A program made the translations under genes and the position numbers. This document shows positions 3,101 through 50,204 of a stretch of 64,000 nt of DNA, in pieces (position 1 is the first letter of the stretch; every line of letters begins with the position of its first letter). The notes under the pieces were generated by a model. It ran no database searches, was not told the DNA's origin, and saw nothing but the letters and a program-made list of their open reading frames with translations. This DNA is from Scyliorhinus canicula (Eukaryota), in assembly GCF_902713615.1 (NCBI RefSeq), contig NC_052160.1, positions 137,248,737 to 137,312,736 on the forward strand, written 5' to 3'.

Positions 3101-3139
<39 letters not shown>

Positions 3140-9920: not shown

Positions 9921-10125
9921 TGTTAATAAATTAATAAATATTTTGGTGTTGCAAAATTCCCGTTAAAATGGACACGACTTCACACAAATGTCATTCATTT
10001 ACCTCTACCTAGTTTCTTGTACTTTTTCATGTTTCCAAGTATTCTAACATCTCTGTTGAGTAAACTGTAGACTAGAATTTAACTAATGCTGATGATCTGA
10101 ATATTCAGCTCGGGCTGTTACTCAC

Positions 10126-10162
10126 CGGGCAGGGAACAGATGAGGAGAATTAGAATCCACAT
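10126..10162 (-). CDS. Gene A exon 1, signal peptide MWILILLICSLP(G)
   Basis: ATG plus hydrophobic run, ending G|gtgagt; paralog of 49720-49756. Confidence 0.87.
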
Positions 10163-19044: not shown

Positions 19045-19375
19045 TGCTTATGGCGGTCTAACTTTTGTAATTGTTTTGCAGAAGGACGCCATTCGGCCCA
19101 TCAGGTTTGTACCGAACCTCCGAAAGATCCACCCTACCTGGGCCCACTCCCCCGCCCTATCACTAACCCCAGCTAACCACTGAGGGGCAATTTAGCATGG
19201 TCAATCCACCTAACCTGCACACCTTTGGACTGTGGGGGAAACCGGGGCACCCGGAAGAAACCCACGCAGACACGGGGAGAGCGTGCAGACTCTGCAGAGA
19301 CAGGCAAGGCTGGAATTGAACCCGGGTTCCAGGCGCCGTGAGGCAGCAGTGATAACCACTGTGCCATTGTGCATG
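19045..19375 (-). mobile_element. V-SINE
   Basis: Reverse-strand tRNA head and V core. Confidence 0.8.
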
Positions 19376-19684
19376 TTGTTTGCTAATATGTACAACCTTA
19401 ATAAACAAGCTTAAAGAAAATTGTTCAAATGTTCAAAACTGGATGAGTAATGAATCTTTGATCAGGAGGCAAAATTCCATCAATGTCGATGCAAGCCCAG
19501 AATCGTCATTTCCCCACATTGGATAAGCTGTGAGAACCGGAATCATTGAGTGGCTGGAAAAGACAAACATCAGAATCATTGAGAATGAGAACGATGAATC
19601 AATTGACATTTCAGTTTTGAACAGAATTCTGCAAATGGCAACAAATTGAGACAAAGCTTCTGAAGAAGTGGAGCAGTTTCAGGA

Positions 19685-19810
19685 TCACTCTGTCCCCCCA
19701 TTGCATGTGTGCTGGGAAAATCTCTCATTTGTGTCCTTCTGGAAAACATGGAACTTTATTTTCTCACAGGTAACTAATGTTTCCCTGCAGCTGTGATTCT
19801 GGACAGTTGA
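19685..19810 (-). CDS. Gene B putative terminal exon, 41-aa cytoplasmic tail without tyrosine
   Basis: tatttctccag| acceptor in phase 0, open to TGA ([13 protein letters not shown]...CNGGTE*). Homologous sequence follows the gene C TM exon at ~57066-57314. The region could instead be UTR or intron. Confidence 0.5.
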   Translation of the reverse strand, partial: STVQNHSCRETLVTCEKIKFHVFQKDTNERFSQHTCNGGTE

Positions 19811-22800
19811 CTGGAGAAATACGTTGTTACGTCTGTGTTAGTAAATAGGGGTACAGGGTGGATACGTGGGTTTGAGTAGGGTGATCATTGCTCGGCACAA
19901 CATCGAGGGCCGAAGGGCCTGTTCTGTGCTGTACTGTTCTATGTTAACAATACTATTGGGTCTCAGCCTCTTGATGCAGTCTGCAAAAGTCTAGGTCCCC
20001 TTGTGTTCTTGTCCAAAAACAATCAGCCCTGTCGCTGTTTTTTAACCTTTCCCATTTCCTTCCTTTTTCTTGTATCGACAATTTAATAAGATTGGATTAC
20101 ACCAGGGGTGGGCAAACTTTTCCGTGCAAGGGCCACATTCAGAAATTCACAATTCACAAAGGGCCGCATAGTATATTAAGTAAAATAATTAATTCACCCG
20201 GTTATGATTCTGGGCGCCTCATATAGAACATAGAACAGCACAGAACAGGCCTTCGGCCCTCGACGTTGTGCCGAGCAATGATCACCCTACTCAAGTCAAC
20301 GTATCCACCCTATACCAGTAAGTAACCCAACAGCCCCCCCGCATTAACCTTAAAAAAAAATTTAAAAAAAAAAAAAAGAAATTTTAAAAAAAAATTTTTT
20401 TTTTTTTTTTTAATGACTTGGTGGGCCGCAGAAATACCTTTGGCGGGCCGCATGCGGCCCGCGGGCCGTAGTTTGCCCACCCCTGGATTACACGATGGAA
20501 GGGTTCTATAAAGGATAGTTACACATAACCATAGCAACAGGAGTAGCTCATTCATCCCCTCGAGACTCTTGCACCTTTCAATTGGATAAGATTGGGTTTA
20601 TCTGTTATTCCACTCCTATTTCTGCTCACCAATCCATATCCTTTGATATCCTTACCTAAGTTTAATTGGCCCAGCATCCAATCCTCAAGGCTAAATATGA
20701 AATGTTCTGAAAGGGCAAGAACCCTTTTGGAAATCCTCAGCAACAACAGCTTTAGCTGGAGAGGTTAGAAGTTGCAATCTGGACACGTGACCTAAAACGC
20801 AGCGAGAATGAAACCTTGAGGGGAGAGAGGTCGGGTCGGACGGAGGCAGGCCACAATCTGGAGAAGGTACCACAGAGGCTGTACCACAAGGTTCAAGTAA
20901 AGGAGGCCCTGGTATGGAGACTGGAGGGGCAGTGGGCACAACGTAAACACAGATCGACAGCCTTGGGCAACAACTAAAGAGGCTGGAAACTGGACTTGAA
21001 CGAAGCCATGTTTTTATGAAGGTCAAGAAGTATTGCAAGGAACTATACCCCAGTGAGAAGCGGATACCTGGCATCGTATTAGCACAGACACAACCGGTCT
21101 CCCACACCGTTCAAACTCAGGATGATTTTTGGTGGAGAGGAAATGCTGACCAATTTTTAGCAACTAGAACTAGTTTGCCAGAGGCAGAGTCTGCAACAAA
21201 CTGTGCCAAGTGTAGACCGAGACATTCCTGAAAACCTGACAGTACCAGAAACAACTGTTGGTGTCAATACCCCAGTTACAGACACCAACAGTGTCAACTT
21301 GCAAACACAACATCATCTCTGGTTGAGACACTTACGGAGGACGTCGAAACGACACCAAGAACACCAGAGGTTGCAGCCAACATAAAAACACAGATGCCCG
21401 GGACTTGCCAACAACCACACAGAAATCCATGTCCTCCAAAACATTTAACTTATTGGCTGTTGCATTTGTTAATTGTTCACTTTGTAAGTTTTGATTGTTA
21501 ATCTTGTATTGTGTTTCATTGCAGAAACCTCTGTTGTAGGTTTGGTCCATTGATGATTGTTCCTAGGTCAACCACGTGACGTATGGATGACATTATCAAC
21601 AGTTTGGACGGGCTAACCGTCAGTCGATTCTAGCAGCCTGTGTGACAACACCTTTCCAATAAAGCTCTTATTTGTTTTCACCTTCGTGGTCTCCAAAAGT
21701 ATCCTTTAAAAAATACCACAGTTTACATCAATGCAAGATTTTCTTCCCAATATCCAGGGCCGGCTCAAGGTACCGGCAACTCGGGCAGTCGCCCGGGGCG
21801 CCATGTGCTAGGGGGCGCTAGGAACCCTTTATAAATGTTCAGTCATTTCTGTGAATTGCTGGTACAGCGAGATTTCTTTAGTGACTTTTGATCAAGTCCT
21901 CAACGGGAAGGGAAGACGCATATTTGCTTTGATGTCTGCCGAGATAGTGAAGCAAGCATGGTTCTACATTTGGGTTCACATATGGAGGGGGGGGGGGGGG
22001 GCATTGGTAAACACAACCAGCGGGCCTGCTGCTGGGGCCACAGGGCTGCCCCGCCGCCGAGGCCAACAATCACGAGTTCGCTTCAGACGTCCTTTTGCAG
22101 CCGCGAAAAGGGAAAAGTCTGACATCTGGTTAAAGTTACTGAATGTGCAGCACATGCATCTGAGGGAGAAAGTTTAAAAATGATACTTGTAAGGGCGCCG
22201 AAGTTCAGCTTGCCCGGGGCGCCAGCAACCCTAGGGCCGGCGCTGCCAATATCTGTGGTCAATGCATTTGGAATAATTGATGGAGGGTTTACAAAGCGTT
22301 CAGAATGATTCTTGTAAAGTCCGTAATGCTCACCTTAGATTTTCCCGCACACCATGTGACTGAAACAGCACAAATCACCAGCAGAGTAAAGAGCCCCCAG
22401 CGGATCACATCCCAGATAATGTAACTGAGGAAAACGGAAAAATTACATTATTTGCAGGAAATGCGACTACTTCACGTTTGAAACATAAATCTCCTGTTTC
22501 CACTGTGACCTTAGTGTATTGCAGCAACGTAAAGCAGCAGAGACAAGGCACATCCACTGGAAAAATAAAATAACGTTTTACTGAAAAACCTCATGATTAT
22601 TAGATAAAGATTAAAGGGAACAAATTTTATAATATTTCCACAGCATATCTCTCATGCTAAGTAAAATCTTAGAAAGAATTTTATAAATTGGCTGGTCATT
22701 GGAACGGATGCACTATCTGGTGCAATATAGCAATGGTGACGTATCTGTTCAGTGAGTAAGGAACTCAGAATAACACCATCTAACACTGTTTCGAAGTACA

Positions 22801-25800
22801 GTCATGTTCAATTCAATGTTAACTCTGCTCCTCTCTTGACAGATGCTGCCAGTGTGATTAATGTAGGAATTTCAGATGGATTTTATTGTATGTATTTGGG
22901 GCAATAAGTGTTAAACTCTGCGTTAGCAGTCTGCAGTGTGTGACTGCTGCAGTCACGTTTTCACACATAGCCTAGTTTGAAAGGCAAATATCTTTTGGGA
23001 GCCAGTGGTGCAGTCAAACCATCATAAAAAGCTTGGGCTGCTAGAATTTTGTTTTAATTAAGGGGATTCCCTGTGGACTTAATTAGATTCCAGCTTGGCA
23101 AGATGATGTCATTGCTGAGTGGAGCTAAGGCACTGGGCATTTTGCAAACGGCGGGTCAGTTCTGATTTGAATGAAGCTGTGTCCAGAAGTGAAGCAGTTT
23201 TCTCTCACTGCAGATCAGTTAAAAAATATTAACAGTCTTTAAAGCAGTGCAGACTTGATTGAGAACAATGGGGGAGCTGGAACAAGCTGAGAAACAGCTT
23301 CTGACGAAATACAGCCAGGGTTTCTGCATGGGTCTGACAGGACATAGAACATAGAACATAGAACATAGAACACTACAGCGCAGTACGGGCCCTTCGGCCC
23401 TCGATGTTGCGCCGACCTGTGAAACCATCTGAAGCCTATCTGACCTACACTATTCCATTTTCATCCATATGTCTATCCAGTGACCACTTAAATGCCCTTA
23501 AAGTTGGCGAGTCTACTACTGTTGCAGGTAGGGCGTTCCACACCCCTACTACTCTCTGAGTAAAGAAACTGCCTCTGACATCTGTCCTATATCTATCACC
23601 CCTCAATTTAAAGCTATGTCCCCTCGTGTTTGTCATCACCATCCAAGGAAAAAGACTCTCACTGTCCACCCTATCTAACCCTCTCTTATATGTCTCTATT
23701 AAGTCACCTCTCAGCCTTCTCCTCTCTAACGAAAACAACCTCAAGTCCCTGAGCCTTTCCTCGTAAGACCTTCCCTCCATACCAGGCAACATCCAAGTAA
23801 ATCTCCTCTGAACCCTTTCCAAAGCTTCCACATCCTTCATATAATGTGGTGACCAGAACTGCACGCAGTACTCCAGGTGCGGCCGCACCAGAGTTATGTA
23901 CAGCTGCAGCATGACCTTGTGGCTCCGAAACTCAATCCCCCTGCTGATAAAGGCTAGCACACCATATGCCTTCTTAACAGCCCTATTAACCTGGGTGGCA
24001 ACTTTCAGGGATTTATGTACCTGGATGCCGAGATCTCTCTGTTCATCTACACTACCAAGAATCTTGCCATTAGCCCAGTACTCTGCATTCCTGTTACTCC
24101 TTCCAAAGTGAACCACCTCACACTTTCCCGCATTAAACTCCATCTGCCACCTCTCAGCCCAGCTCTGCAGCTTATCTATGTCCCTCTGTATCCTATAACA
24201 TCCTTCAGCACTATCCACAACTCCACCGACCTTCGTGTCATCTGCAAATTTACTAACCTATCCTTCTACACCCTCTTCCAGGTCATTTATAAAAATGACA
24301 AACAGCAGTGGCCCCAAAACAGATCCTTGCGGTACACCACTAGTAACTGAACTCCAGGATGAACATTTGCCATCAACCACCACCCTCTGTCTTCTTTCAG
24401 CTAGCCAATTACTGATCCAAACCGCTAAATCACCTTCAATCCCATACTTCCTTATTTTCTGCAATAGCCTACCATGGGGAACCTTATCAAACGCCTTACT
24501 GAAATCCATATACACCACATCAACCGCTTTACCCTGATCCACCTGTTTGGTCACCTTCTCAAAAAACTCAATAAGGTTTGTGAGGCATGACCTACCCTTC
24601 ACAAAACCGTGTTGACTATCGCTAATCAACTTGTTCTTTTCAAGATGATTATAAACCCTATCTCTTATAACCTTTTCCAACATTTTACCCACAACCGAAG
24701 TAAGGCTCACAGGTCTATAATTACCAGGGTTGTCTCTACTCCCCTTCTTGAACAAGGGGACAACATTTGCTATCCTCCAGTCTTCCGGCACTATTCCTGT
24801 CGACAAAGACAACATAAAGATCAAGGACAAAGGCTCTGCAATCTCCACCCTGGCTTCCCAGAGAATCCTAGGATGAATCCCATCTGGCCCATGGGACTTA
24901 TCTATTTTGACATTTTCCAAAATTGCTAACACCTCCTCCTTTTGAACCCCAATTCCATCCAGCCTGGTCGACTGAACCTGAGTATTCTCCTCGACAACAT
25001 TGTCTTTCTCCAGTGTAAACACTGACGAAAAATATCCATTTAACGCTTCCCCTATCTCCTCTGATTCCACACACAACTTTCCACTACTATCCTTGATTGG
25101 CCCTAATCTTACTCTAGTCAGGACATTGAAAACAGCGCGAGAGGTAAGACAGCCAGGACATTGAAAACAGCGCGAGAGGAGAGACAGTCGGGACATTGAA
25201 AACAGCGCGAGAGGTAAGACAGTCGGGACATTGAAAACAGCGCGAGAGGAGAGACAGTCGGGACATTGAAAACAGCGCGAGAGGTAAGACAGCCAGGACA
25301 TTGAAAACAGCGCGAGAGGAGAGACAGCCAGGACATTGAAAAGAGCGCGAGAGGAGAGACAGCCGGGACATTGAAAACAGCGCGAGAGGTAAGACAGTCG
25401 GGACATTGAAAACAGCGCAAGAGGAGAGACAGCCAGGACATTGAAAAGAGCGCGAGAGGAGAGACAGCCGGGACATTGAAAACAGCGCGAGATGTAAGAC
25501 AGTCGGGACATTGAAAACAGCGCGAGAGGTAAGACAGCCAGGACATTGAAAACAGCGCGAGAGGAGAGACAGCCAGGACATTGAAAAGAGCGCGAGAGGA
25601 GAGACAGTCGGGACATTGAAAACAGCGCGAGAGGTAAGACAGCCAGGACATTGAAAAGAGCGCGAGAGGAGAGACAGCCGGGACATTGAAAACAGCGCGT
25701 GAGGAGAGACAGCCAGGACATTCAAAAGAGCGCGAGAGGAGAGACAGCTGGGACATTGAAAAGAGCGCGAGAGGAGAGACAGTCGGGACATTGAAAACAG

Positions 25801-28800
25801 CGCGAGAGGTAAGACAGTCGGGACATTGAAAAGAGCGCGAGAGGTAAGACAGCTGGGACATTGAAAAGAGCGCGAGAGGAGAGACAGCTGGGACATTGAA
25901 AACAGCGCGAGAGGAGAGACAGCCGGGACATTGAAAACAGCGCGAGAGGAGAGACAGCCAGGACATTGAAAAGAGCGCGAGAGGAGAGACAGCCAGGACA
26001 TTGAAAACAGCGCGAGATGTAAGACAGTCGGGACATTGAAAACAGCGCGAGAGGAGAGACAGCCAGGACATTGAAAACAGCGCGGGAGGTAAGACAGTCG
26101 GGACATTGAAAAGAGCGGGAGGGGACACATTGAGAGCGGCGGGGTGCCAGTGGGAGCAAAGATAATATAAGGCGGGAACCGGAAGTACGACCCGCGGACT
26201 TCTGGGAAGGATTTTCTCCTAGCCAATAAATTGTGGTGGAGAGGATACCCGAGACACTACACGTGTAGTGTCTCCCACCCGCCCTCCTCCTCTAACCTAA
26301 TAATAAGACCCATTGGGGTGGGCAGGGAAGTGCTATATTATATTATTATTTTTTTATTTGTTTTATATTTGTTTACCAGAACTTGGTTGAAATTAAGTGG
26401 GATGGCAGGGAAGGTAGTGCAATGTTCCTCCTGCAGGATGTTTGAGGTGAGGGATGCCGTTAGTGTCCCTGCTGATTTTACCTGCAGGAAGTGCAGCCAG
26501 CTCCAGCTCCTACAAGACCGAGTTATGGTACTGGAGCTGGAGTTGGATGAACTTCGGATCATTCGGGAGGCAGAGGTGGTCATAGATAGGAGCTTCAGGG
26601 AAGTAGTTACACCAAAGACTGGAGATAGATGGGTAACTGTAAGAGGGATTGGGAAGAAGCAGTTCCCTGCGGTCGTTCCCCTGAGTAACAAGTATACCGT
26701 TTTGGATACTTGTGGGGGGGACGACTTACCAGGGGTAAGCCATGGGGTGCGGGACTCTAGCACGGAGTCTGTCCCTGTTGCTCAGAAGGGAAGGGGGGAG
26801 AGGAGCAGAGCATTAGTAATTGGGGACTCAATAGTCAGGGGCACAGATAGGAGATTTTGTGGGAGCGAGAGAGACTCACGTTTGGTATGTTGCCTCCCAG
26901 GTGCAAGGGTAAGTGATGTCTCGGATCGTGTTTTCCGGGTCCTTAAGGGGGAGGGGGAGCAGCCCCAAGTCGTAGTCCACATTGGCACTAACGACATAGG
27001 TAGGAAAGGGGACAAGGATGTCAGGCAGGCCTTTAGGGAGCTAGGATGGAAGCTCAGAGCGAGAACAAACAGAGTTGTTATCTCTGGGTTGTTGCCCGTG
27101 CCACGTGATAGTGAGACGAGGAATAGGGAGAGAGAGCAATTAAACACGTGGCTACAGGGATGGTGCAGGCGGGAGGGATTCAGATTTCTGGATAACTGGG
27201 GCTCTTTCTGGGGAAGGTGGGACCTCTATAGACAGGATGGTCTACATCTGAACCTAAGCGGCACCAATATCCTGGGGGGGAGATTTGTTAGTACTCTTTG
27301 GGGGGGTTTAAACTAATTCAGCAGGGGCATGGGAACCTGGATTGTAGTTTTGGGGTGCGAGAGATTGAGAGTAGAGAGGTCAGGAGCACAGATTTGACTT
27401 CGCAGGAGGGCGGCAGTGTTCAGGTCGGTGGTTTGAAGTGTGTCTATTTCAATGCCAGGAGTATACGAAATAAGGTAGGGGAACTGGCAGCATGGGTTGG
27501 TACCTGGGACTTCGATGTTGTGGCCATTTCAGAGACATGGATAGAGCAGGGACAGGAATGGTTGTTGCAGGTTCCGGGGTTTAGGTGCTTTAGTAAAGTC
27601 AGAGAAGGGGGCAAAAGAGGGGGAGGTGTGGCGCGGCGAGTCAAGGACAGTATTACGGTGGCGGAAAGGATGCAAGATGGGGACTCTTCTTCCGAGGTAG
27701 TATGGGCTGAGGTTAGAAACAGGAAAGAAGAGGTCACCCTGCTGGGAGTTTTCTATAGGCCACCTAATAGTTCTAGAGATGTAGAGGAAAGGATGGCGAA
27801 GATGATTCTGGAAAAGAGCGAAAGTAACAGGGTAGTTGTTATGGGAGACTTTAACTTTCCTAATATTGACTGGAAAAGATATAGTTCGAGTACATTGGAT
27901 GGGTCGTTCTTTGTACAATGTGTGAAGGAGGGTTTTCTGACACAATATGTTGACAGGCCAACAAGAGGTGAGGCCACTTTGGATTTGGTTTTGGGTAATG
28001 AACCAGGCCAGGTGTTAGATCTGGAGGTAAGTGAACACTTTGGAGACAGTGACCACAATTCGGTGACCTTTACATTAGTGATGGAAAGGGATAAGTATAC
28101 CCCGCAGGGCAAGAGTTATAGCTGGGGGAAGGACAATTATGATGCCATTAGACATGACTTAGGATGTGTAGGTTGGAGAAGTAGGCTGCAAGGGTTGGGC
28201 ACACTGGATATGTGGAGCTTGTTCAAGGAACAGCTATTGCGTGTTCTTGATCAGTACGTACCAGTCAGACAGGGAGGAAAGGGTAGAGCGAGGGAACCGT
28301 GGAATCTCTTGTTAAGAGGAAAAAGGAGGCCGATGTGAAGATGAGGCGTGAAGTTTCAGTTGGGGCGCTTGATAGTTACAGGGAAGCGAGGAAGGATCTA
28401 AAGAGAGAGCTAAGACGAGCAAGGAGGGGACATGAGAAGTCTTTGGCAGGTAGGATCAAGGAAAACCCAAAAGCTTTCTATAGGTATGTCAGGAATAAAA
28501 GTATGACTAGGGTAAGAGTAGGGCCAGTCAAGGACAGTGGTGGGAAGTTGTGTGTGGAGGCTGAGGAGATAAGCGAGATACTAAATGAATACTTTTTGTC
28601 AGTATTCACTCAGGAAAAAGATAATATTGTGGAGGAGAATGCTGAGACCCAGGCTATTAGAATAGATGGCATTGAGGTGAGTAGGGAAGAAGTGTTGGCA
28701 ATTCTGGACAAGGTGAAAATAGATAAGTCCCCGGGGCCTGATGGGATTTATCCTAGGATTCTCTGGGAAGCCAGGGAAGAGATTGCTGAGCCTTTGGCTT

Positions 28801-37800: not shown

Positions 37801-40800
37801 AAATCTCCAGACGGGGTCTTTTCAGTCCATGTGTACTGAATGGGGAGGGACCCCCGGAGAGACTCACAGGAGACGGACACTGAGCCCCCAGAACATGAGA
37901 CTTTTGGCGGGGATAAAAATCTCAGCACAGGAACAGACACGGATTCTGTGGGAAAGAAACAAACATTCAGATACTGACGGACCGTCTAAATATAAAATAC
38001 CCTGTGAATTTCACCAGTCCTGTATCTCAACCAGGGCCTGTGTTTTGGAATCTGACCAGCACATCCACCTCTCTGTATCTCTCCATCCTCCTGTAGTCTG
38101 AACTACGGCCATTGTATCAAAGCCTCAGGGTGGGATTCTCCGGCCCCCCCCCCCAAGCCGTGTGTTTCCCTGCACCGCGCGGTCCGCTCAGCGACGGTAT
38201 TCCATACTCCTGCCGCTTGTCAATGACATGTCCCATCCTGAAAGGGGGCCCCAATCGGCACTGTCACCTACTGGATCCCAGCCCCCATCACGGGTCCAAC
38301 AACACTCAAGAAGCTTGGCACCATCAAGGATAAAGCAACCCGCTTGATCAGCACCACAAACACCAAATTAAAATTCCACTCCCTCCCCCTCTACAACCTA
38401 CAATCTCTGCATTGTGTACCGTCTGTAAGATTGTGTACCATGTATAGGATTGTGTACCATGTACAGGATTGTGTACAATCTCTGCATTGTGTACCATCTA
38501 TAGGATTGTGGCCCATTTATAGGATTGTGTACCATTTATAGGATTGTGTGCTATCTATAGGATTGTGTACCATCTATAGGATTGTGTACAATCTCCGCAT
38601 TGTGTACCATCTATAGGATTGTCTACTATCAATAGGATTGTCTACCATCTATAGGATGCACTGTGACAATTCAGTTGAACGTCTTCAATTGCATCGTCCA
38701 AATTCGGGACCTGTACCATTTAGGAGTTCAAGGGCAGCAGATGCATGTGAACACTGCACCCTACAAATCATACATCACCCCGACTTCACTACAACTGGGT
38801 TAGAATCCTGAGACTTCCTCCCTAACAGCACAGTGAAAGCAGCATCACCATGTGCACTGCAGTGGTTCATGAAGACAACTCCCCACCATCTTTTTAAAAA
38901 TAAAATTTGAGTACCCGATTCATTTTTTCCAATTAAGGGGCAATTTAGCCTGGCCAATCCACCTAACCTGCACATCTCTTTTGTGTTGTGGCAGCGAAAT
39001 GCACGCCAATCAGGGAGAATGTGCAAACTCCACACGGACAGTGACCCAGAGCTGGGGTTGAACCTGGGACCCCAGAGCCATGAGGCAGCAGTGCTAACCA
39101 CTGCACCACCTTGCTGCCCTCCCACCATCTTTTTAAGGGCAATTACAGATAAGTATTCGAGACCCAACTATCTTCAGCTGCTTCATCAATGACCATCCTT
39201 CCAAAATAAGGTCAGAAGTGAGGATGTTCCCTGATGATTTCACAATTTTCAGCACCATTCGCGACTGGACAGATGCTGAAGCAGTCCCTGTTCAAATGCA
39301 GCAAGACCTGAACAATACCAGGCAGAGACAGGAAGGTGGATGAGCAGCTCATGTGATATTTGGTCCAATACCTGATAGTTAAAGAAATTGTTTATCTGAA
39401 AATATCTGAAATCCTTGCTCAGAATGTTGGACAGGCCAGGAATTGGGTTTGTGTAACACAGGTCGAATCCCCGGCATCTGCCCCCTACCTGCCAGACTCT
39501 GCACTGCAGTGGAGACTCGGGATATCGGACCTGTCGGGTGTGATCTCCGGCTGCGTTCCTCGCTCTGCGTGGATCCCTGGAGATGCTGGGAGAGGCCTTC
39601 CGTCGGCTTCCTGGCAGCCTTTACGCCTCGCAGGATTATACCCCAGCCCCACGAGGCGTCAGAATCCCGCCAAAAGGGGTGTGACCAAATGGCGCACACC
39701 TACGTAGGTTCTAAACCTTCGGGATCTACCAGCCTCCCCAGTGAGATTGCAGCCAGGCCCCGTTCAGTACTGGTCTATACAAACATAGACCAGGTGGAAC
39801 GGCGCCCGGGGGTCTCCCGGGGCCCCTGAGTGGGAGGTAAGTGCAGGCTGCCCCCCCCCCCCCCCCCCCCCCAGCCTTCCCCCTGGAACATGGACACTTT
39901 GCACTATCCAGCTGGCACCTTGTCACTGTCACCCTGGCAGCAGCATGTCCAGGATTCCAGTGTGTCAGTGCAAGGGTGCCCGGGTGCCAGAGTGGCACTG
40001 CCAAGGGACGGTGCCTGAGGGGGGTGGGGGGGGGGCATGCCCATGAAAGGTGGGTGGAGGGGCTCTTTGAAGGTGCAGGACAGTTCATAGGGACCATTAG
40101 GAGGTTTGTGGGGGTGACAGGTTGGGATCCTGGAGGGAAGGGGCCTGTAAGGGGGTGGGGGGGGGGGTGGGTGTTGGGGGGGGGGAACTGAAGAAAAGGG
40201 GCCCCCAGGGCTCCCTCACTGGGGAGGGAGGGGGTGATGTTTACATGTGTGGGATGTGACATTGTCCATGGGTGGGGTCGGATTCACAACCACACTTAGA
40301 ACATCCTTTCAAAATGGCGGCACGATCTCTGAGGTCAGCTCCCCAGTGCTGAAAACAATTTCAGGGGCGAGATTTCACCAGCTCTGTGACAGCGAGCGGG
40401 AAAAGCCGCGCGTTTCCCGAGGCTCGGTCCGGTGAGGCCGTCACCGGTATAAAACGTCCATTGGTCCACTTATCGAGGCCCCGTGGGATTCACGCCGTAA
40501 ATCATCATTCGCTGGCTAATTTGCCTGGGACCACACTGGCCAGCCCCCCCCACTCAAACCGCTCCTGCACAGCCGACCCCACTCAGCTCACAGCCAGTAC
40601 TGTGGAGACCAGCCACACGCTTTGGAGAAGCCGACCTGGGCAGATTTCTGGATGTGGTGGAGACCAGGAGGGATGTCCTGTTCCCCTGAGGGTCGAGGAG
40701 AGCCAGACACAGGGCAGCCAGTACCGCCTGGGATGAGGTGGTAGTGGCCGTAAGCTCAGGGAGCGTGTTGAGAACTGGCATCCAGAGCCGCAAGAAGGTC

Positions 40801-43800
40801 AACGACCACCACCGGGCCGCACGGGTGGGTAGGCAGCCTCCCCGCTGGAAGGCCCCGGCCCACCCAGGGCCAGCTGTGCTGCCTACGCCACCCCCTACTC
40901 CCACTACCCCCTAACAACTGTCCCCCCATACGCCCCAATCCTCAAGCCTTCATACTCCACATGCCCCCTTACTCTCCATCCCCCCATATGGCCCATCCCT
41001 CCTCCACCAAGCCCCCCCATTGAGCACCTCCCGCAATCAAAGATGCGTGCGGCTCACAAAACCCTCTCTGTCCCCGCAGGAGAAGCTGGCCCACAACAGG
41101 TTGGAGAGGCCCAGATGGGCGACGGGGGGGGCCGGACACCACAGTATTCTTGGCACAGCTGTCATCCTCACCCCCCACCAGCACAGAGACACACACCCTG
41201 GAGGGAGAATGTAGTCGACAGGCTTCTGGGGCCCATCCTGGTGAGCACCACAATCCTGCTGAAGCACATCTGGTGCGGTAAGGAAATCCCAGGGAAAACA
41301 GCAGCCCGAAGTCTGTTGGATCCCAGGACAGGCAGAGCGCCTGGGCAGCATGATCCCGTCTCAGGTGGGCATAGCCGAGATGCTCCAGAGCGTCGCCCAG
41401 TCACTGAGGAGCATCACTCTGGGCGCCAACACTGTGCTGCAGGCATTGGGGAGTCACCAGAGCTGGCAGAGCCAGATGGTGCAGTGGCAGCCGGGGCTTA
41501 TCCAGCTTCCCCTCCATCCCGGGGTGAACCCCAGGGCCCTACGGACACCGACTGGGAGGAGAGGGAGCTAGGTGCCAATCCAGAGCCACCCGATGGAGTG
41601 GCGACAGCGGCCACTAGCCTCCGCCCCCCCCCCCCCGCCCCCCCCCCAAGACCTACCCTCTAGGCAACGGCACATCCAGGGGTCAGCACCCAGGACAGGG
41701 CTTGTGTCACAGGCTAGTGCCCTGAGGCCCTCTGGCCACAGGGCCCCCAGAGGATGAGCGTCAGGGGCATCAAAGGCCAAAGGGCGTGGGAAGCAGGAGG
41801 CTGCCTCCACCTCTGATGTGCATCCTGGTGACACACTTAGATATAATGGTAGGGCACAGAAGGCAAAGCCGATCACGGATTGCTGAGAGGGAACTGGGGT
41901 TGGATAAAGGGCAATGGGGGAGGGGGCAGGAGATTAGCGAGGGGAAGGGGTGGGGAGGGGTTGGTAGTGATGGGGATAGTGGGGCGGCACCTTCGGGGGA
42001 TGGAAACGTTGACCTTGCACACTATGGCGCCTCTGCCACCTTCTTCCGCTATGCGGGTTGTACGGCTATCCCATGCCACACCTTCACTGACATGGCGGTT
42101 CTGGAGGCCGTGTCTCTGTAATGTTTATTCTAGATTTTATGAATAAAGTATACTTTTTGAAAAAAAAACTTGTCTCCGGAGACAGATGCAGTGGTATTTG
42201 CGGTGGTTCATCCCGAGCAGCTCTGTGACACAGGACTCTGCTCTATGGACTGTTTCCAGGGACACACACCGAGACAAACATCAACTGCTGCTGGAAGGTC
42301 ATCAACTCGGTGAAAGTCGCTCTTTGGTCTGCCCGTAACTTGCTGACCTTCCAGAGCAAAGAATTGTCCTCGACCGAGTGTTGCAGACTGGCACATTCCA
42401 AGGTCCAGGACTACGTGCTGAGGGACGCACTCAAGCTTGGGGCAGCTGCCGCCAAGGCGCAATGGGGAAAGGCCACTGTGTAAGGTCTGACCAGCAAATG
42501 TACACCGAGGGGGTGGGTAACAGTGTAAAACCCCTCGGTCCGGGTCATTAACACTTCAATGTATAAAAGAATCATGACGATGTTAATATTTAAGAAAGAA
42601 TTGTAACGTAAAGATTAATATGTGTATAATGCCATCCCAATTGAATGGAAGAAAGTCAAGTGAATGTGTGACTTTGATGGAAATATACAGTCAACACAAT
42701 TCGGAATGTTGATTATAGATTTTATGAATAAAGTGTATTTTTTGAAAAAAAAACCTATCCCCGCAAGTGGGGACCAGACAGAACGGCACGCGGGTGGGTC
42801 TCCCAGGGGCTTGGAGGCCCCGAGATGCATGCCTTTTTGGCTGGGTGGCACCCTGGCACTGCTGGTGCCACCCAAGCACCTTGGCACTGCCAGACTGGCA
42901 CCCTGGCAGTTCCAGCTTGGACCCTGGCAGTGCTATCTGGGTGCCAGCCTGGAAGGGTGTTGGGGGGGGGGGGGGATTGCGACACCGTTAGTGCACAAAA
43001 CAGGACTGTGTGCGACCTCGGCCGCTCATTTCCAACTGACGCCCTTTATTAAAAAGCGATTGACGGTTTATAGCCATGTGTTTGTCGGCACTGCGAGAGC
43101 CGGGAAACACTCGGCTAAACACGCTCCCCATGGGACTTTGTTCCCTTATAGTAAAAGCACATCCTCAGTGTTGTTATGGTAGCGGTGGGCAACTCGCTCA
43201 CAGAGCCATCAGGAAACTCCCTGCAAAACAATGTGGAAAAGTGTGAGGTTATTCACTTTGAAAGGAGGAATTTAGGCATAGATTATTTTCTAAATGGGGA
43301 GATGCTTAGGAAATCAGAAGCACAAAGGGACTTTGGAATTCTTGTTCAAGATTCTCTTCAGGTTAAGGTGCAGACGTACATCCCTGCTCCTGTATTCTAG
43401 CCCTCTCAACATGAATGCTAACATTGCATTTGCCTTATTTTATTATTGCCTTAAATTATTATTATTGTTATTAGGTTCAGTCAGCAGTTAGGAAGACAAA
43501 TGCAATGTTAGCATTCTTGTCAAGAGGGCTAGAATACAGGAGCAGGGATGTACTTCTGAGGCTGTATCAGGCTCTGGTCAGACCCCATTTGGAGTATTGT
43601 CAGCAGTTCTGGGCCCCGTATCTAAGGAAGGATGTGCTGCCCTTGGAAAGAGTCCAGGGGAGGTTCAGAAGAATGACACTTGGAATGAAGATTTTGTCGT
43701 ATGAGGAGTGATTGAGGACTCTGGGTCTGTACTCGTTTAGAGTTTAGTGAATGTGGAGAGGGTGTTTCCACCTGTAGGAAAAACGAGAACCCAAGGGCAC

Positions 43801-46800
43801 AGCCTCAGACTGAAGAAACGATCATTTAAAACAGGGATGAGGAGGAATTTCTTCAGCCAGATGGTGGTGAATCTGTGGAACTCTGTGCTGCAGAAGGCTG
43901 TGGAGGTCAAGTCACTGAGTGTCTTTAAGACAGATAGATAGGTTGTCGATTAATAAGGGATCGGGGGTTATGATCAGCCATGATTGACTGGCGGAGCAGA
44001 CTCGATGGGCTGAATGGCCTAATTCTGCTCCTATGTCTTATGGTCTTACAACTTGCCACAAATAAACTTCAAAATGTTTCCCTTCAATTCCACCCGTTGT
44101 GTTTCCTCCTGGAGTAAATATTGATCAGACATTTCAGTCGAGATTAACAAAGAAAATCACCAAGAAACGTACCTTCAGATATTTGTAGCTCAACTGCAAA
44201 TAATATATCCAATCCAGGTTTTTTAATTCCACAGCTGTACCATCCTGTATCTTCTGAACGAAGATCCTCCACAGTAACAACAAACATTCTTTCTGCCTTG
44301 TTGTCTCTGATCGACATTCTCCCTCTCCGTCCACCTGAATCATCTGATTTTACCAAAATGGAGCACCTAATATTCACACCATCGCACCAATATTTCACCA
44401 TTTCCCGGTACGCTCCATCATAGTGACAATTTATTGTGATCGCTCTTCCCACAATTCCTGTTACTTTCTTTTCTGCCGACAATGCACCTGAAACTGAAGA
44501 GACACCGTTTCAGAAATTGAACAAAGAAGAATTGTTAAATACAAACAGGTACATTTTAACAGAAGTTACTAATGTGTACAGAGGAATCTCTCCAGTGCAC
44601 CTTCTAATCCAGGAAAATTCCTTCATGTTTTTGATGAAAGCAAACATAAATATCGTGACTTATCACAGCCTCAGGATGTGACAGAGAATTTCACAGTCAA
44701 TGATTAACTTGTGAAACTTTTGGGGTGTTTTAACTTTCTTGATCCAACAGCAAGAATTGGACGTTGGTAGTTAGAGGGGTTCATGGAAATCAGGGTTCTG
44801 TTGTGTACTGTGATGTTCAACTCTGTTGCATGTGTGCAATGTCACTGACTGATTGACAGGCTTGTCTTCAATTGGGGAACAGTGGGAGGATGGTGCAGGA
44901 CCAAATTGGCCCGCGTCTGTACCACACGGGGTGGATTGGGGTTGGTTTGTAGAAGGCCGGTGGTCGGGGTTGGATTTGGATTCTGGTTGGGGTGGGGCTG
45001 GAGGCCTCGGAGTTGGGCTGTGATGGGTGGCTCAGAGAGAAGGTGGGTGGGCTTTGTGGGGGTGTGAAAAATAGAGGCTCATTGCTTGGGCTGTCGTGTT
45101 GGTGTCTTCGTGCAAGGGTCTGGGAGCTGATCAGACAACAGGTTTCCCCTTGTGTAAGGCGAGTCATTCCTGATTGATGTGCGCAATTAGAATATCAACA
45201 TCATCCTTAGAGGTCACCTCATTCATCCAACTCACTTGGGCTGTGAATTAAACAAGTCTTTGAACAGGAACAACCAGCCACCAGGAAACTAATCACTGAC
45301 AGCCTGGCCTTTATAACCAGTCCTGGACCTTGATCCTCCATACAGCTCTCGCCCCCTGGCTTCACAGTGCTGCCTGACTGTATGAGTTCACACTCACTGC
45401 AGTCACCTCCCCCCCCCCCCCCCCCCACCCCCACCCCCGTGTGAAAGTCTTCAGACCCCATGAGTCCAGAACAGACCCATTCTCAGAGGGCCCACTTTGC
45501 CCCTGTAGCCTGGCCTCCAATGGAATCCCACCAGGGACCTCACAGCCACCTTCAGTGCTGCCCCTGTGGATTCACCCTCACCCACTTTCCAGCTGCAACT
45601 CTGGAGGGGCAATCCCTCAGCGGTGATATCGCCACAAACCCAGCAAGGAGGCACAGGAATCACTGCCAGCACACCAGCCGCCGGACCCCTTCAAATCCAG
45701 AGGCTCCCAGACATGAGGGGCCGCGAAGACCTGCGAGTGACCCTAACTCCTGAGGTCCTGAGGCTGAACCCCACCCACCCCAAGATGAGCCTATCTGGGT
45801 CCCCCGCGTCCTCGCCACAGACCCCACTGCATTGGCACCCAGAATGCGATGGCGACCCGAGCACTCATCTCCGATATGCCCTTCGGAGCTGAGGTCGGAG
45901 GTCAGGCCGGCAGGTTCTCGAACCGTTGCAGCTGTTGTTAATCACGCCGGCGCGACGTCTCGCCGGAGACGAGTGAATATTCAGTGAGTGAGGACGTCTC
46001 GGAGGGAGGTGGGCTCAAAATCACCCCTCTTGGATGGAATCTCGTGTCCTCTCCAGGGCACGTTTGGTGGCAGGGGCATTTAATTGGTTGGGAAGTTGGT
46101 AAGTGTGGACACTGCCACCTCAGCCCCTCCACTCCTGAATAAATTGTGGGTAGAGAAGCTGGGAGACAGCCTTGCCACCATGCCACCAATTGTGGGCCAT
46201 TTAATGCCCACTTATTGGCCTCATCCTGCCACCGCTGGCATGAACCCAGTCGATGGGGGACTCACCAGTTAGGGACTCAACAAGCAAACCCCTGTGTGTG
46301 GTTGTGGGCTGCGGGTGAGGGTGACATTCCTTCACGGAAAGGCACTCAGGGTCTGAACGGTGAACCTGGTATTGGGAAGCAGGGGGCTCGCTGATAGCCA
46401 CACCCCTGCCTGTGTTTCCAACCCTCCATCACCACAACTCCCCTGTAAACCCTCTCCCCTGATGTCCCTCCCGCCCTTACTCCCCTCTGATGGAGATTCA
46501 AATTCCACTCAGAGAGGAAAATGGCGGCTGACATTAAGGAACGGACCTGAAGGTGCTGTACTTTCAGACCTTGGGAACCATGTGTGGAATATTGTGTCCT
46601 GCCCTGTGGCAACTTTGGTGGTAGGGGGCATTTAATTTGGGTGAGAAGGTGGGTGAGAGTACAGACCCCTTACTGTCTTATATAAGACACGAGTCTGAGA
46701 CCCAAACTTCGCCCTTCAAACTGAATATGACGTTCTACATGTTATGATCACTGTTACCTGGAGGCTCTATTAATATAAGGTTATTGATTAATCCTGTCTC

Positions 46801-49756
46801 ATTGTACATTCCCGGGTCTAGAATACCTTTCTCTCTGGTTGGCTCTAGAATATACTGCTCTAGAAATCATCCAGAACTCACTTTCCAGGTTATCTTTGTC
46901 AATCTGATTCACCCAAACCAAATGTAGATGAAGCCACTGATGATTGTTGTGGTACATCTCTTACACCCTCCATTTATTTCTTCCTGTGTTGTCTGTCCTA
47001 CAGTCCAACTATTTTCCGGAGGCTTAGAAGCTACTCAATCAATTTACCTCTTCCCTTTTCTGTTTTTCAACTCTCCCAGTACTGATTCTACACGTTGTTC
47101 TTTTGAGCGAAGGTAATCTCTCACCCCTCTGTTAATGAGATTGTTGATTAAACGAGCGACCCCACCACCTTTTCTTAGCTTCCTGTCCCTTCAAAATGTC
47201 AAATATCCTTCAATAGTCAAGTCCCAACCTTGGCCACTTTGCAACCATGTCGACAATGGCTAACAGGTCACAGATATTATATTTTTATCTTCACTAACAA
47301 TTCTTCCATTTTGTTATGAATGCTGTATATATTTAGATACAGAGGATGGAATTTCCCCAAAATGTGGCTCTGTTAATATTGATGTGAGAATTGGTGCGAA
47401 TCCTGTCGGCCCTGGGGTCATGATCCGGAGCACAATTTGTAGCCATTTGGTGGAAAAACAAATTCTCCACGTGAGATATGTTGGCGTTGTTGCTCTGTAA
47501 ATAATGTTGGTGAACCACAAGCCTCCTGTTATATCGATCAAATGACCACACAACCAGTTAGCTAGTTCAAAAGATGGTTTATTTACATACACAAGAGTTA
47601 CCTCGACATGCAAACACAAATATCTACTACGAGTTAAACTACACCTATCAGCTACAATTACCGATACTTAACTTCAGGGCGACCGGCACTGTGCAAATGG
47701 ATAAGGCCTTTATCTGGATTTCACTTAGCTGGTTCGAAGAAAGTGGCTCTGTCTCTGCTGGGCTCATCTGTCAGGTAGCGATCGTTGGTCTTGAACTTGA
47801 CTGGCTGTTCCTGCTGCAATTGGGTTGGCACAGGCCGGATCCAAAAGAGGCAGAACACTTGGCTGTGCCCTCTTTTATCTCTCTGGGATTTCGCGCTCTC
47901 TGGGGAGGTCCTTAACCTTGGACCTAATAATTCGACAGGGCTCTGATCAGTGTCTTCGATTTCGGCCAATAAAGGGGCTAGTGCCTTGGTGACTGGGTGG
48001 GTCCTTAGTGGTCATTGACCTTGGCTGTTGGGCTTTCTGATTGAGGGGAGTAGCGTCGATCAGTCTGTGGCTGTACCGATTGCTTGAGTGGAGTTCTATT
48101 GTCCTGGGAAAATGGGCCATTAAAATGCAAACGAGCGGGGGTTTCAATCAGGCCTGGTTACCTGTGTTTCAGGTACACATAGGCTGTGTATCTGTCTGAG
48201 ACCTGGGTTGACCATAATTCCCATGGTCCTTTGCAGGTGGCCATCTTCAATGGCTGCAGCGTGAAGCATCTGATTCGCCTGCCTCTGGGGGTAATCTGAG
48301 CAGTTCTATACCTTCAGCTGATGTGTGATTCTCCGCCCGATCGCAGTTCTCAATTGCAGCCTCAGCCCACGGAGAATTGAGCCCAGAGGCTGGGGGAATT
48401 TACTGGAACGGTTATTCGACCAATAACCCTGCTGGCTGAGGAACTGAACAGGTGGGGGAAGAGCTGACACTGAAACAAGGTAAAGAGACAGAGAGTGGAG
48501 CAGAAAGGAAAAATATTTAGGAAACATTTAAGAAGTTGAATGGAATGGACAAGAGCTCAGGTCAGAAAAAGGGAGTATTGAAAGAGGAAGATTGTCAACA
48601 GACAGATGCACACGTCACTTAAATGTACAGAAGCACATCATATATTTTTTGAATAAAATTGATAAATTAAAAGCATCGATTTCTATTTGGAGTTTTGATT
48701 AAATAGAATTAATAGAGTCCTGATTTAGAGCAGTGTGTTACTGAGTTTAACATTGCGAGATAGAACATAGATTCATCAGCAGTGGTAGCGTTGATCAAAG
48801 ATTCCACGGCCGTCTCATTTTCCAGGATTATATAGAGTTAGAGTGAAACATAAAAAGAGAGTTGTTTCTTGTAAAAGAATGTGAATAAAATCGTTCCCCG
48901 TTGGGAGGGAAATGTAGATGAACAATCTACCCGTGTCTCACAGAGCCTCATTTATATTGAACACTTTAAACAACCAAAATAACTGGAAACTCGTGACAGT
49001 TCTGTTGCAGAGATCACTAACAGTACAGTTTTCAACATCATTATAGAACATAGAACAGTACAGCACAGAACAGGCCCTTCGGCCCTCGATGTTGTGCCGA
49101 GCAATGATCACCCTACCTAAACCCACGTAACCTGTATACCCGTAACCCAACAATCCCCCCATTAACCTTACACTACGGGCAATTTAGCATGGCCAATCCA
49201 CCTAACCCGCACATCTTTGGACTGTGGGAGGAAACCGGAGCACCCGGAGGAAACCCACGCACACACGGGGAGGACGTGCAGACTCCACACAGACAGTGAC
49301 CCAGCCGGGAATCGAACCTGGGACCCTGGAGCTGTGAAGCATTGATGCTAACCACCATGCTACCGTGAGGCCCATTATATTGGACATCAGATTATGAAGA
49401 ATCACCTTTTACACATTTAAAACAGATTACCTTTTTGCTTTGTTTCTTCCTCGATTAGCTTTTTAATTAATTAAATTGATATTTAAATGTTCTATTCACA
49501 GTTAATAATAAAGTTTACTGCGTGTTAATAAATATTTCTGTGTTACAATAATCCCGTTGAAAGGGACACGACTTCATACAAATTTCATTTGTTTATCTCT
49601 ACCTAGTTTCTTGTGCTTTTACATGTCTCCAAGTATTCTAACATCTCTGTTGAGTAAACTGTAGACTAGAATTTAACTAATGCTGATGATCTGAATATTC
49701 AGCTCGGGCTGTTACTCACCGGGCAGGGAACAGATGAGGGGAATCAGAATCCACAT
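19685..49756 (-). CDS. Gene B: spliced Ig-superfamily immune-type receptor (leader-V-C2-stalk-charged TM-short tail), predicted 322 aa from 6 exons
   Basis: Exons 49720-49756, 44173-44487, 37622-37945, 36464-36539, 22334-22424 and 19685-19810 total 37+315+324+76+91+126 = 969 nt. All introns are GT-AG with phases 1,1,1,2,0, and the frame is open throughout. The terminal exon is the least certain. Confidence 0.8.
20103..20485. mobile_element. hAT (Charlie-like) MITE with 8-bp TSD GATTACAC, carrying a SINE tail fragment (~20221-20400)
   Basis: Perfect 16-bp TIR CAGGGGTGGGCAAACT/AGTTTGCCCACCCCTG; TSD on both sides. Confidence 0.9.
20950..21720 (+). mobile_element. Gypsy integrase C-terminus remnant plus probable 3' LTR (~21532-21720)
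   Basis: [32 protein letters not shown] resembles the W.PG.V...GP.SY.V...RRH.DQL motif; TGTTG...AATAAA...CACA block follows. Confidence 0.5.
21755..22245. mobile_element. hAT MITE with 8-bp TSD CCAATATC
   Basis: Imperfect TIR CAGGGCCGGC/GCCGGCGCTG, subterminal GCCCGGGGCGCC repeats, TSD at 21747-21754 and 22246-22253. The paralogous intron near 62110 lacks it. Confidence 0.85.
22334..22424 (-). CDS. Gene B exon 5, transmembrane segment [30 protein letters not shown]
   Basis: ttttcctcag| acceptor, AAG|gtgagc donor, 91 nt. Hydrophobic helix with Asp and Arg; a paralogous exon lies at 62178-62268. Confidence 0.85.
23342..25120 (-). mobile_element. Outer CR1, 3' half (RT domain and tail)
   Basis: [10 protein letters not shown]...PQGSVLGP...FADD; one TGG>TAG stop at 24258-24260; (TTCTATG)n tail. 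Confidence 0.95.
25121..26118 (+). repeat. 35-bp tandem array, ~28 copies (GGACATTGAAAASAGCGCGAGAGG[TA/AG]AGACAGYYR)
   Basis: Unit starts at 25121, 25156, 25191 and onward; no unique spacers. Confidence 0.97.
26402..27316 (+). CDS. CR1 ORF1p (zinc finger, coiled coil, SGNH/GDSL esterase), open 304 aa
   Basis: ATG at 26402; CSSC...[31 protein letters not shown]. Confidence 0.88.
   Translation: MAGKVVQCSSCRMFEVRDAVSVPADFTCRKCSQLQLLQDRVMVLELELDELRIIREAEVVIDRSFREVVTPKTGDRWVTVRGIGKKQFPAVVPLSNKYTVLDTCGGDDLPGVSHGVRDSSTESVPVAQKGRGERSRALVIGDSIVRGTDRRFCGSERDSRLVCCLPGARVSDVSDRVFRVLKGEGEQPQVVVHIGTNDIGRKGDKDVRQAFRELGWKLRARTNRVVISGLLPVPRDSETRNREREQLNTWLQGWCRREGFRFLDNWGSFWGRWDLYRQDGLHLNLSGTNILGGRFVSTLWGGLN
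27433..30182 (+). pseudogene. CR1 ORF2 (APE + RT) with three frameshifts (~28300, ~29115, ~29680-29710)
   Basis: Four overlapping track ORFs carry consecutive APE, RT ([12 protein letters not shown]) and C-terminal motifs. Confidence 0.93.
30277..32546 (-). mobile_element. Outer CR1, 5' half (5'UTR, ORF1 32409-31474 with one nonsense codon at 32185-32187, APE endonuclease from 31357)
   Basis: CSSC..CGKC zinc finger, coiled coil, SGNH esterase (GDSIVRG, HIGTND, DGLHLN); [12 protein letters not shown]. It ends YRYIKNK, contiguous with TRVRLG at 25120. Confidence 0.93.
33012..33176. repeat. ~165-bp palindrome made of two head-to-head Penelope-type terminal fragments with a hammerhead ribozyme core
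   Basis: Arms 33012-33093 and ~33095-33176 are near reverse complements. Minus strand reads CUGACGA-AGGAGC-UAC-GCUCC-GAAAGCUA. Confidence 0.7.
33960..34745 (+). mobile_element. 5'-truncated L1-clade LINE 3' end with G-rich 3'UTR
   Basis: [17 protein letters not shown] (CCHC), RRILLGW, WL.DL..FL.MEK...RG...F...W motifs. Confidence 0.8.
35328..35626 (+). mobile_element. V-SINE head with an alternative (ATT)n tail
   Basis: HE1-like head and core; the 3' block is shared with the SINE at 15233. Confidence 0.8.
36464..36539 (-). CDS. Gene B exon 4, Ser/Thr/Pro-rich stalk ([25 protein letters not shown])
   Basis: gtttcaacag| acceptor and CCA AG|gtacaa donor. It enters in phase 1 and exits in phase 2, exactly bridging the C2 exon and the phase-2 TM exon. 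Confidence 0.75.
36640..37070 (-). mobile_element. CR1 3' end
   Basis: [14 protein letters not shown]...[10 protein letters not shown] plus tail. Confidence 0.85.
37622..37945 (-). CDS. Gene B exon 3, Ig C2 domain (FcR-like/PECAM-like) with a Cys-bearing C-terminal extension
   Basis: ttcccacag|AA TCC GTG acceptor, AAT G|gtaagt donor, 324 nt, phase 1-1. Motifs [20 protein letters not shown] and [10 protein letters not shown]; sequons NVS and NCS. Confidence 0.88.
38400..38660 (+). repeat. 19-bp minisatellite (ATAGGATTGTGTACCATCT) inside a LINE 3' fragment (~38300-39180)
   Basis: Period 19 at 38520, 38539, 38558 and 38577. Confidence 0.85.
38898..39120 (-). mobile_element. V-SINE (A-rich tail type) with 16-bp TSD CCCACCATCTTTTTAA
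   Basis: TSD at 38882-38897 and 39121-39136. Confidence 0.88.
39537..43165 (+). mobile_element. Harbinger-derived element, paralogous copy including its probable left end
   Basis: Same Myb remnant as 670-2000, with degenerate GGGYGYGAT-like termini near 39537 and 43160. Confidence 0.5.
44173..44487 (-). CDS. Gene B exon 2, Ig V domain of CD300/pIgR/TREM type
   Basis: tttcag| acceptor, GAA G|gtacgt donor, 315 nt, phase 1-1. Contains INC, YWC..C (second disulfide typical of CD300/pIgR) and DTGWYSCG. Confidence 0.93.
49046..49372 (-). mobile_element. Full-length V-SINE present only in duplication copy 2, TSD CATTATA
   Basis: TSD at 49039-49045 and 49373-49379; empty site at ~9497-9504. Confidence 0.92.
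49720..49756 (-). CDS. Gene B exon 1, signal peptide [12 protein letters not shown](G)
   Basis: ATG followed by a hydrophobic run, ending CCC G|gtgagt (phase 1). It joins the V exon to give ...[11 protein letters not shown]. Confidence 0.85.
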
Positions 49757-50204
49757 CGTTTTATTTGCAGAGGTCAGATTAGAACTTGTCGTCAGTCGCC
49801 CAGCTCCTCGTTTTCAGATTGAAATAATTGTCTGAAATAGATTCCAAAGAACTTAAAAGAGGAAGAAGGCAGCTGGAAGTCAGGGTAATGAAATTACTGT
49901 ATCTAACCCTGATGCAATAAGAGCAGCAGAAGGAAGGACAGGAGTTGACCACACTGCGTCTCGAACTTGCTCCACCATTCAATACATTCAATCTTCATCA
50001 TTTTCCTTCAACCCAGTTTTCTGTCCTCTTCCCATATTCCTTGATTACCTGTGAGGCTAAAACTCTATGTCTGTCTCAGCCTTAAATATCATCTTTGAAG
50101 AGCTTTGTTTTTTTTTGAGGCGCACCCTCACTGGAAAAGAAAAACAAAACAGGAAACAGAAAAAGGGAAACAGACAAAGGAAACCGATTGAGCATTCAGA
50201 GTCT

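Follow-up and report, generated by a model that had tools for sequence, protein, structure and literature searches.

A partly annotated MDIR-family receptor gene of the small-spotted catshark, probably the activating partner of an adjacent inhibitory gene

We identified a six-exon immune receptor gene in a 64,000-nucleotide (nt) stretch of small-spotted catshark DNA (Scyliorhinus canicula, contig NC_052160.1, positions 137,248,737 to 137,312,736; hereafter the window, in whose coordinates all positions are given). The gene is real and expressed, and it is a new, partly annotated member of the known MDIR (modular domain immune-type receptor) family. We consider it likely that it encodes a 298-residue type I membrane receptor of the activating kind, the partner of an inhibitory receptor gene directly beside it.

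Gene structure and transcript evidence

Exons were located by open reading frame (ORF) listing and direct reading of the minus strand, and then by RNA contigs. The receptor gene lies on this strand, as do all exons given below, and comprises six exons and five canonical introns (AG/GT) in phases 1, 1, 1, 2 and 0. The frame stays open across all six exons, giving a supported coding sequence of 897 nt and 298 amino acids (aa). A six-exon gene had been proposed in an initial annotation made from the sequence; five of those exons stand, with their canonical sites and compatible phases, while the terminal exon is displaced by the one that RNA joins to the transmembrane (TM) exon.

The TM and tail exons of the receptor gene are transcribed and spliced. 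In RNA contigs of runs X13, X14, X5 and X11, which come from three studies and were placed on positions 19250-22480, the TM exon is spliced GT..AG from 22334 to 19553 in all four runs, and the contig pieces of X13 and X14 have no mismatches. This TM exon (exon 5, 22334-22424), covered by exact contigs in X13, X14 and X5, encodes a helix with an Asp and an Arg in its outer third. The coding part of exon 6 (19506-19553) encodes PLNDSGSHSLSNVGK followed by TGA, and a 3' untranslated region (19337-19505) continues within the spliced contigs into a repeat resembling a short interspersed nuclear element. The pieces concerned cover 19337-19553 (X13), 19343-19553 (X14) and 19392-19553 (X11), and the transcript extends to at least 19337. 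The TM-to-tail junction, one of those proposed for checking against RNA, is thus seen directly, but at 19553; the originally predicted acceptor at 19810 is joined in none of the four runs. The corrected cytoplasmic tail is KSKPLNDSGSHSLSNVGK, 18 residues without tyrosine, so that the initial description of a TM Arg above a tyrosine-free tail holds on both counts and fails in the sequence and length of that tail.

The first three exons, together with their two junctions, correspond at 100% to residues 1-227 of P0226, a 613-aa S. canicula RefSeq model named 'Fc receptor-like protein 5', a match that also confirms the suspected cartilaginous fish origin of the sequence. Exon 1 (49720-49756) holds the start ATG and the beginning of the signal peptide and ends in a phase-1 donor (CCCG/gtgagt); it is 100% identical to the P0226 N-terminus and lines up with the initial Met in most of the family. 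Exon 2 (44173-44493) encodes a V domain of the CD300/pIgR type with two Cys pairs, supported by Pfam, by matches in the PDB and by P0226 residues 13-119 at 100%. Exon 3 (37622-37945) encodes a C2/Ig_2 domain of the FCRL type and a membrane-proximal NCSY motif; it equals P0226 residues 120-227 at 100% and carries RNA contigs. Exon 2 has a tandem acceptor, 44493/44487 (cag/TTTCAG/GT), with the two sites 6 nt apart, and use of 44487 would drop the Val-Ser at the end of the signal peptide. From homology and from P0226, the acceptor at 44493 (..SLPVSGAL..) is favoured, which places the exon start 6 nt upstream of the one first proposed.

The V exon can also be followed in the sequencing runs themselves. 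Of the words sampled from 44100-44560, about 0.70 are present in runs X13-X16, a value that equals the whole share of exon 2 in that interval, and the exact V exon of this copy is therefore present in those runs. Two of them, X13 and X14, hold the V-exon words as well as the TM and tail transcript.

The C2 exon leaves off in phase 1 but the TM exon begins in phase 2, and an exon bridging the two is therefore needed. When the interval from the C2 exon to the TM exon was scanned blindly for a bridging exon 142 or 148 nt long, only transposon ORF fragments were returned. The true bridging exon is exon 4 (36464-36539), a 76-nt exon running from phase 1 to phase 2 with a gtacaa donor, which encodes a Ser/Thr/Pro-rich stalk collinear with those of P0013, P0178 and P0226; the length shortfall sat in the terminal exon of the initial annotation. 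A contig of run X4 joins 37622 to 36539 (GT..AG) and covers 36539-36464, and its origin is weighed below. The contigs that carry the Arg-TM and tail exons include 92-113 nt of upstream exon sequence. In X13 and X14 the stretch 5' of the TM piece, which itself already has the final AG of the stalk, is exactly 92 nt long, the sum of 74 nt of stalk exon and 18 nt of C2 exon. A unitig built at k=31 would be expected to stop at that point in the C2 exon, provided that stalk base 13 is where the paralogues first differ, and a difference at that base (TCT vs TAT, Ser vs Tyr) is implied by P0226 and by the mismatches of the X4 contig.

Two features were seen around the stalk exon. A pair of Cys residues, one within N-C-x-Y and one within Y-[ST]-C, lies about 13 residues apart across the border of exons 3 and 4 (37640-37660 and 36520-36535, minus strand) and is conserved in chimaera, skates, gar, caecilian and newt; it may form a membrane-proximal disulfide loop or a site of dimerisation. 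Read-through past the stalk donor (36340-36463, minus strand) stays open and contains a short hydrophobic stretch where the inhibitory paralogue encodes its TM segment. We discarded this stretch as a relic of an inhibitory TM, the similarity not being significant (298 of 2000 shuffles reach the score). A search inside the gene with three inhibitory tails for exons encoding ITIMs (immunoreceptor tyrosine-based inhibitory motifs) gave nothing convincing.

Domain identity and family membership

The two extracellular domains have distinct nearest relatives, with matches well above what chance would give. The V exon matches Pfam V-set at E=1.2e-10, and among solved structures the V domain finds pIgR (best single domain, independent E-value (i-E) 2e-12), CD300f (E=3e-21), CD300a (CMRF35-H; 8e-18) and NKp44 (2.6e-7). 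Its Cys residues, in the pattern INC...KYWC...RCS...YSCG, provide both the canonical disulfide and the extra C-C' disulfide, as had been read from the sequence when a V domain of the CD300/pIgR/TREM type was proposed. The second domain is assigned to Ig_3/Ig_2 by Pfam, and its sole strong solved relative is FCRL5 (best domain 32.5 bits, i-E 7.8e-7), with which it has the motifs CE..RGSLPI.Y and YYCTA.N in common. Mammalian FCRL5 proteins and multi-immunoglobulin (multi-Ig) fish proteins come nearest to it outside the family. Where the initial annotation had named an FCRL/PECAM-type C2, the YYCTASN motif is indeed present and both structures and annotated proteins favour the FCRL part. Per-domain searches of the kind that it suggested thus lead from the V domain to pIgR and CD300f, from the C2 domain to FCRL5, and from the whole protein to MDIR.

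With the C2 domain as query, an exhaustive search yielded 122 proteins at E<=1e-10, and the highest-ranking of these share the V-C2 layout. These relatives form an elasmobranch and chimaera family annotated variously as 'pIgR-like', 'CMRF35-like' and 'FCRL5', and the homologues include the deposited MDIR2, MDIR3 and MDIR5 of Rostroraja eglanteria (clearnose skate) and MDIR2 of Callorhinchus. In BLASTP searches with the 298-aa model, XP_038676045.1 (P0013) aligned over residues 1-298 with 71% identity (E=4e-143). The link to MDIRs that had been suspected from the sequence was borne out in the same searches by R. eglanteria MDIR2 (56% over 238 aa, E=2e-93), R. eglanteria MDIR5 (52% over 276 aa including the TM segment, E=4e-87) and C. 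milii MDIR2 (46%, E=3e-58). Arg-TM proteins from further sharks and skates also aligned over the full length. Among the family proteins compared, 26 have an R-W-x-[LF]-F TM motif with a short tail and 29 have at least two ITIM-like motifs. The tail PLNDSGSHSLSNVGK is homologous to PLNDCSSHSFSNVGK of P0013 and to the corresponding tails of other sharks' Arg-TM relatives.

Relatives with the V-C2 layout occur in spotted gar, there with an Arg TM, and in caecilian and newt. The 'hybrid' arrangement is therefore an old standard design and not a recent shuffle. Cannon and colleagues are said to have described MDIR1-5 of the clearnose skate (Immunogenetics 58:362, 2006), and the family has reportedly been found in zebrafish too. 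In a passage of a later article, MDIRs are presented as multigene activating and inhibitory receptors that resemble CD300, TREM, FCAR and pIgR (PMC3031540, citing Cannon et al. 2006).

Judged by its sequence, the receptor is an activating-type member of this already known family. The named MDIR proteins have the same Pfam layout (V-set plus Ig_2/Ig_3), and the homology, the module ectodomain, the clustered multigene family of activating and ITIM-bearing members and the origin in a cartilaginous fish all agree with this assignment. CD300 proteins have a single V as their only Ig domain, whereas here the C2 domain of exon 3 follows the V domain. The two or more tandem V domains and the long tail with sorting signals that define pIgR are absent: one V exon only lies between the leader and TM exons, and the tail has 18 residues. 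FCRL proteins and classical Fc receptors (FcRs) consist of C2-type domains only, whereas the catshark receptor begins with a V-set domain of the CD300/pIgR type. A basic TM residue combined with a short tail (KSKPLNDSGSHSLSNVGK) without tyrosine motifs is the sequence pattern of receptors that use adaptors with an immunoreceptor tyrosine-based activation motif (ITAM).

Comparison with known receptors

The closest named systems are MDIR1-5 of skate and MDIR2 of elephant shark, which have the same module of a CD300/pIgR-like V domain followed by a C2/I domain like that of FcR homologues. The 56% and 52% identities of skate MDIR2 and MDIR5 to the catshark receptor extend over 230-276 aa, and MDIR5 has the TM motif S-Y-I-x-W-x-V-x-R-W in common with it. 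MDIR5 consists of two modules (501 aa) and MDIR2 is inhibitory, whereas the catshark receptor has one module and belongs to another species; its short PLND...VGK tail is shark-specific.

Within S. canicula, P0013 (XP_038676045.1, 'polymeric immunoglobulin receptor-like', 304 aa) has the same six-part architecture and length. The TM segment is identical at 30 of 30 residues, the tail at 12 of 15 and the C2 domain at 86%, with 71% identity overall from end to end. P0013 is nonetheless a paralogue elsewhere on the same chromosome, and its V domain is only about 55% identical.

More distant likenesses are found in mammals. The activating members of mammalian CD300 and NKp44 combine a stalk and a short tail with a charged residue in the TM segment, and they form pairs with ITIM-bearing relatives. 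These activating CD300 proteins (for example CD300b, CD300c and CD300e) and NKp44 have the extra-disulfide V domain, as the catshark receptor does; mammalian CD300 proteins differ in lacking a C2 domain, in a TM charge that is usually Lys or Glu, and in having known adaptors. The C2 domains of FCRL5 and other FCRL proteins share CE..RGSLPI.Y and YYCTA.N with the receptor, and mammalian FCRL5 proteins are its nearest relatives outside the family, but FCRL proteins lack the CD300/pIgR-type V head.

Tandem paralogues and the RefSeq model

Three tandem paralogues touch the window. Positions 1-10610 are a tandem copy, 90-98% identical, of 39927-50201, with a period of about 39.6-39.9 kb, and in each of two adjacent receptor genes the promoter, leader, V exon and intron 2 fall within the duplication. 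Inside it lie the leader exon of the downstream paralogue (MWILILLICSLP, 10126-10162) and its V exon (4335-4655), which corresponds to P0226 residues 226-334. This V exon differs from exon 2 at 3 of 321 nt (2 aa; 99.1% identity), while the adjacent intron is about 96% identical, which suggests gene conversion or selection as candidate causes of the closer likeness of the exons. As judged from P0226, the downstream gene continues beyond the window with a C2 domain at 92% identity, a stalk like that of the receptor, an uncharged TM segment and a tail with three tyrosine motifs (IAYAVL, VTYSGI and AVYANV). In sequence, the receptor gene and this downstream gene look like a matched activating/inhibitory pair.

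P0226 splices the C2 exon of the receptor gene directly to the downstream V exon, some 33 kb away, and then runs through the downstream V, C2, stalk, uncharged TM and ITIM tail, without the stalk, Arg-TM and tail of the receptor. It would be either a true read-through isoform with four Ig domains or a prediction fused across a tandem array. In family-wide protein searches, no protein was found with the receptor gene's own stalk, Arg-TM and tail exons. The gene, which the initial annotation had called hidden, is hidden for these three exons; exons 1-3 were already part of a public RefSeq model.

Upstream, a further paralogue contributes a TM exon (YIIWVVIHWVLFALMVIYTVSVIWCTGKYK, 62178-62268; 67% aa identity by tblastn, 85% nt identity by blastn) in which Val and His (YIIWVVIHW...) stand in place of the Asp and Arg of the receptor. 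Its terminal exon (SLTESDAHNVTNATT followed by a stop, 56988-57035) has the same acceptor, length and stop position as exon 6.

Proposed function and alternative readings

The signal peptide of the receptor is followed by a CD300/pIgR-type V domain as the presumed ligand-binding head, with the FCRL-type C2 domain acting as a spacer and a short stalk of the O-glycosylation type, with its conserved Cys pair, leading to the membrane. We hypothesize that the TM Arg would pair with an ITAM adaptor that has an acidic TM residue (of the FcR-gamma/CD3-zeta/DAP12 class), and the receptor would in this way activate the cell. Such pairing is proposed because the receptor has no signalling motif of its own and because it is the general rule for receptors of this kind. 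The ITIM-bearing neighbour may see the same ligand and oppose the signal.

Several points weigh against an activating receptor assembled from these six exons. The X4 contig has three mismatches in the stalk, which match the three aa differences of the downstream paralogue, and it probably derives from that near-identical copy; we have withdrawn it as proof of the C2-to-stalk junction of the present copy, which is therefore placed by homology only. Among the RNA contigs examined, none directly spans this copy's V-to-C2 or stalk-to-TM junction, and the stalk-to-TM link is deduced from phase, homology, the shared 'AG' and contig-length arithmetic. RefSeq ties the V and C2 exons to the downstream gene, and some or all transcripts with the V-C2 exons could have that ending. 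With respect to signalling, a published survey did not find an FcR gamma chain among cartilaginous fish (PMC4016189), and our literature search for shark FcR-gamma and DAP12 gave nothing useful.

We regard as unlikely a different assignment, in which the V and C2 exons would be parts chiefly of the 613-aa inhibitory receptor with four Ig domains and the Arg-TM and tail exons would form a minor or separate transcript. P0226 matches exons 1-3 at 100% before passing into the downstream V exon, such read-through stays in frame because every V and C2 exon is phase 1-1, and V-C2-V-C2 forms occur in other species (skate MDIR5 of 501 aa, P0162 and P0231). However, four runs show splicing and expression of the Arg-TM and tail exons, with upstream sequence whose length fits the stalk and C2 exons of this copy; the receptor gene keeps its own intact stalk exon and canonical sites; and single-module Arg-TM proteins of equal length are modelled in many elasmobranchs. 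The RefSeq junction, moreover, needs a 33-kb intron that skips five good exons and may be an artefact of prediction in a tandem array, and the two fates are not mutually exclusive. It seems to us very improbable that the locus is instead a transcribed but decaying duplicate without a functional protein. A young tandem duplication in a fast-evolving family, introns full of LINE/CR1 copies (LINE, long interspersed nuclear element) and an upstream paralogue that has lost the TM Arg and Asp would suit such decay, but the frame is open over six exons with canonical splice sites, and the gene retains every Ig-fold cysteine, the Trp and the family-specific motifs. The 30 of 30 TM identities to the paralogue P0013, a V exon conserved at 99.1% against about 96% in the flanking intron, and splicing and expression in several studies likewise speak for a maintained gene.

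Hardly any credence is left for the 969-nt frame of the initial annotation, which the supported coding sequence replaces, as a genuine alternative isoform. Its length can be reconstructed solely as 37+315+324+76+91+126, which implies a terminal exon at 19685-19810 and a tail of 42 residues. That exon follows an AG acceptor, its frame is open and fits the phase of the TM exon, and it weakly resembles (IKFH..KD.N) the first cytoplasmic segment of the inhibitory paralogues. It is unused in the RNA examined: depth bins over 19574-19789, which take in most of it, are zero in all four runs that express the TM exon, and no joint occurs there. The upstream paralogue breaks the frame with a 14-nt insertion, and no homologue with such a tail was found among the family proteins compared. 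The resemblance is not significant, with 45 of 500 shuffles reaching the score, and we accordingly dropped the candidate reading of this exon as a relic of an inhibitory cytoplasmic exon.

An extension of the preferred reading, that of an activating MDIR beside its inhibitory partner, is more speculative and in our view rather improbable. MDIR-type receptors might be the shark counterparts, or the ancestral form, of Fc and polymeric-Ig receptors, with the activating/inhibitory pair sensing IgM, IgW, IgNAR or J-chain polymers in the manner of mammalian paired Fc receptors. The 613-aa form would then be a true read-through, and splicing among tandem phase-1 V-C2 modules would give rise to the 'modular' forms.

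Significance

The public gene model is corrected at this locus, where the stalk, Arg-TM and tail exons of the receptor are absent from every protein found and where 'FCRL5' is a misleading RefSeq name for V-C2 exons fused to an inhibitory neighbour. The pair itself is near-identical at one end and opposed at the other, with V exons 99% identical and opposite signalling ends, in a shark. In mammals, such an activating/inhibitory arrangement marks receptors under pathogen pressure. The MDIR family has been known since 2006, and the conceptual gain is accordingly modest.

Fc and polymeric-Ig receptors have been described as missing from sharks (PMC4016189; PMC13337447), and a 2026 review that lists sharks as lacking pIgR and FCRL asks how Fc-dependent functions are managed (PMC13337447). 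By sequence, the MDIR family holds the closest shark relatives of both the pIgR and the FCRL domain types, and it is thus a candidate for immunoglobulin binding.

Repeats within the gene

Intron 4 (23445-32410) contains several copies of the LINE/CR1 type on both strands, with long endonuclease and reverse-transcriptase frames that include one of 361 aa at 30272-31357 and one of 487 aa at 24258-25721. A long array of short tandem units lies at 25.1-26.2 kb in the same intron. Near the TM exon, a mismatch-free piece of 117 nt (22059-22175) occurs inside RNA contigs of 482-680 nt from three runs, the flanks of which do not align to the stretch examined. Because its ends are not splice sites, this piece is probably a transcribed repeat copy and not an exon.

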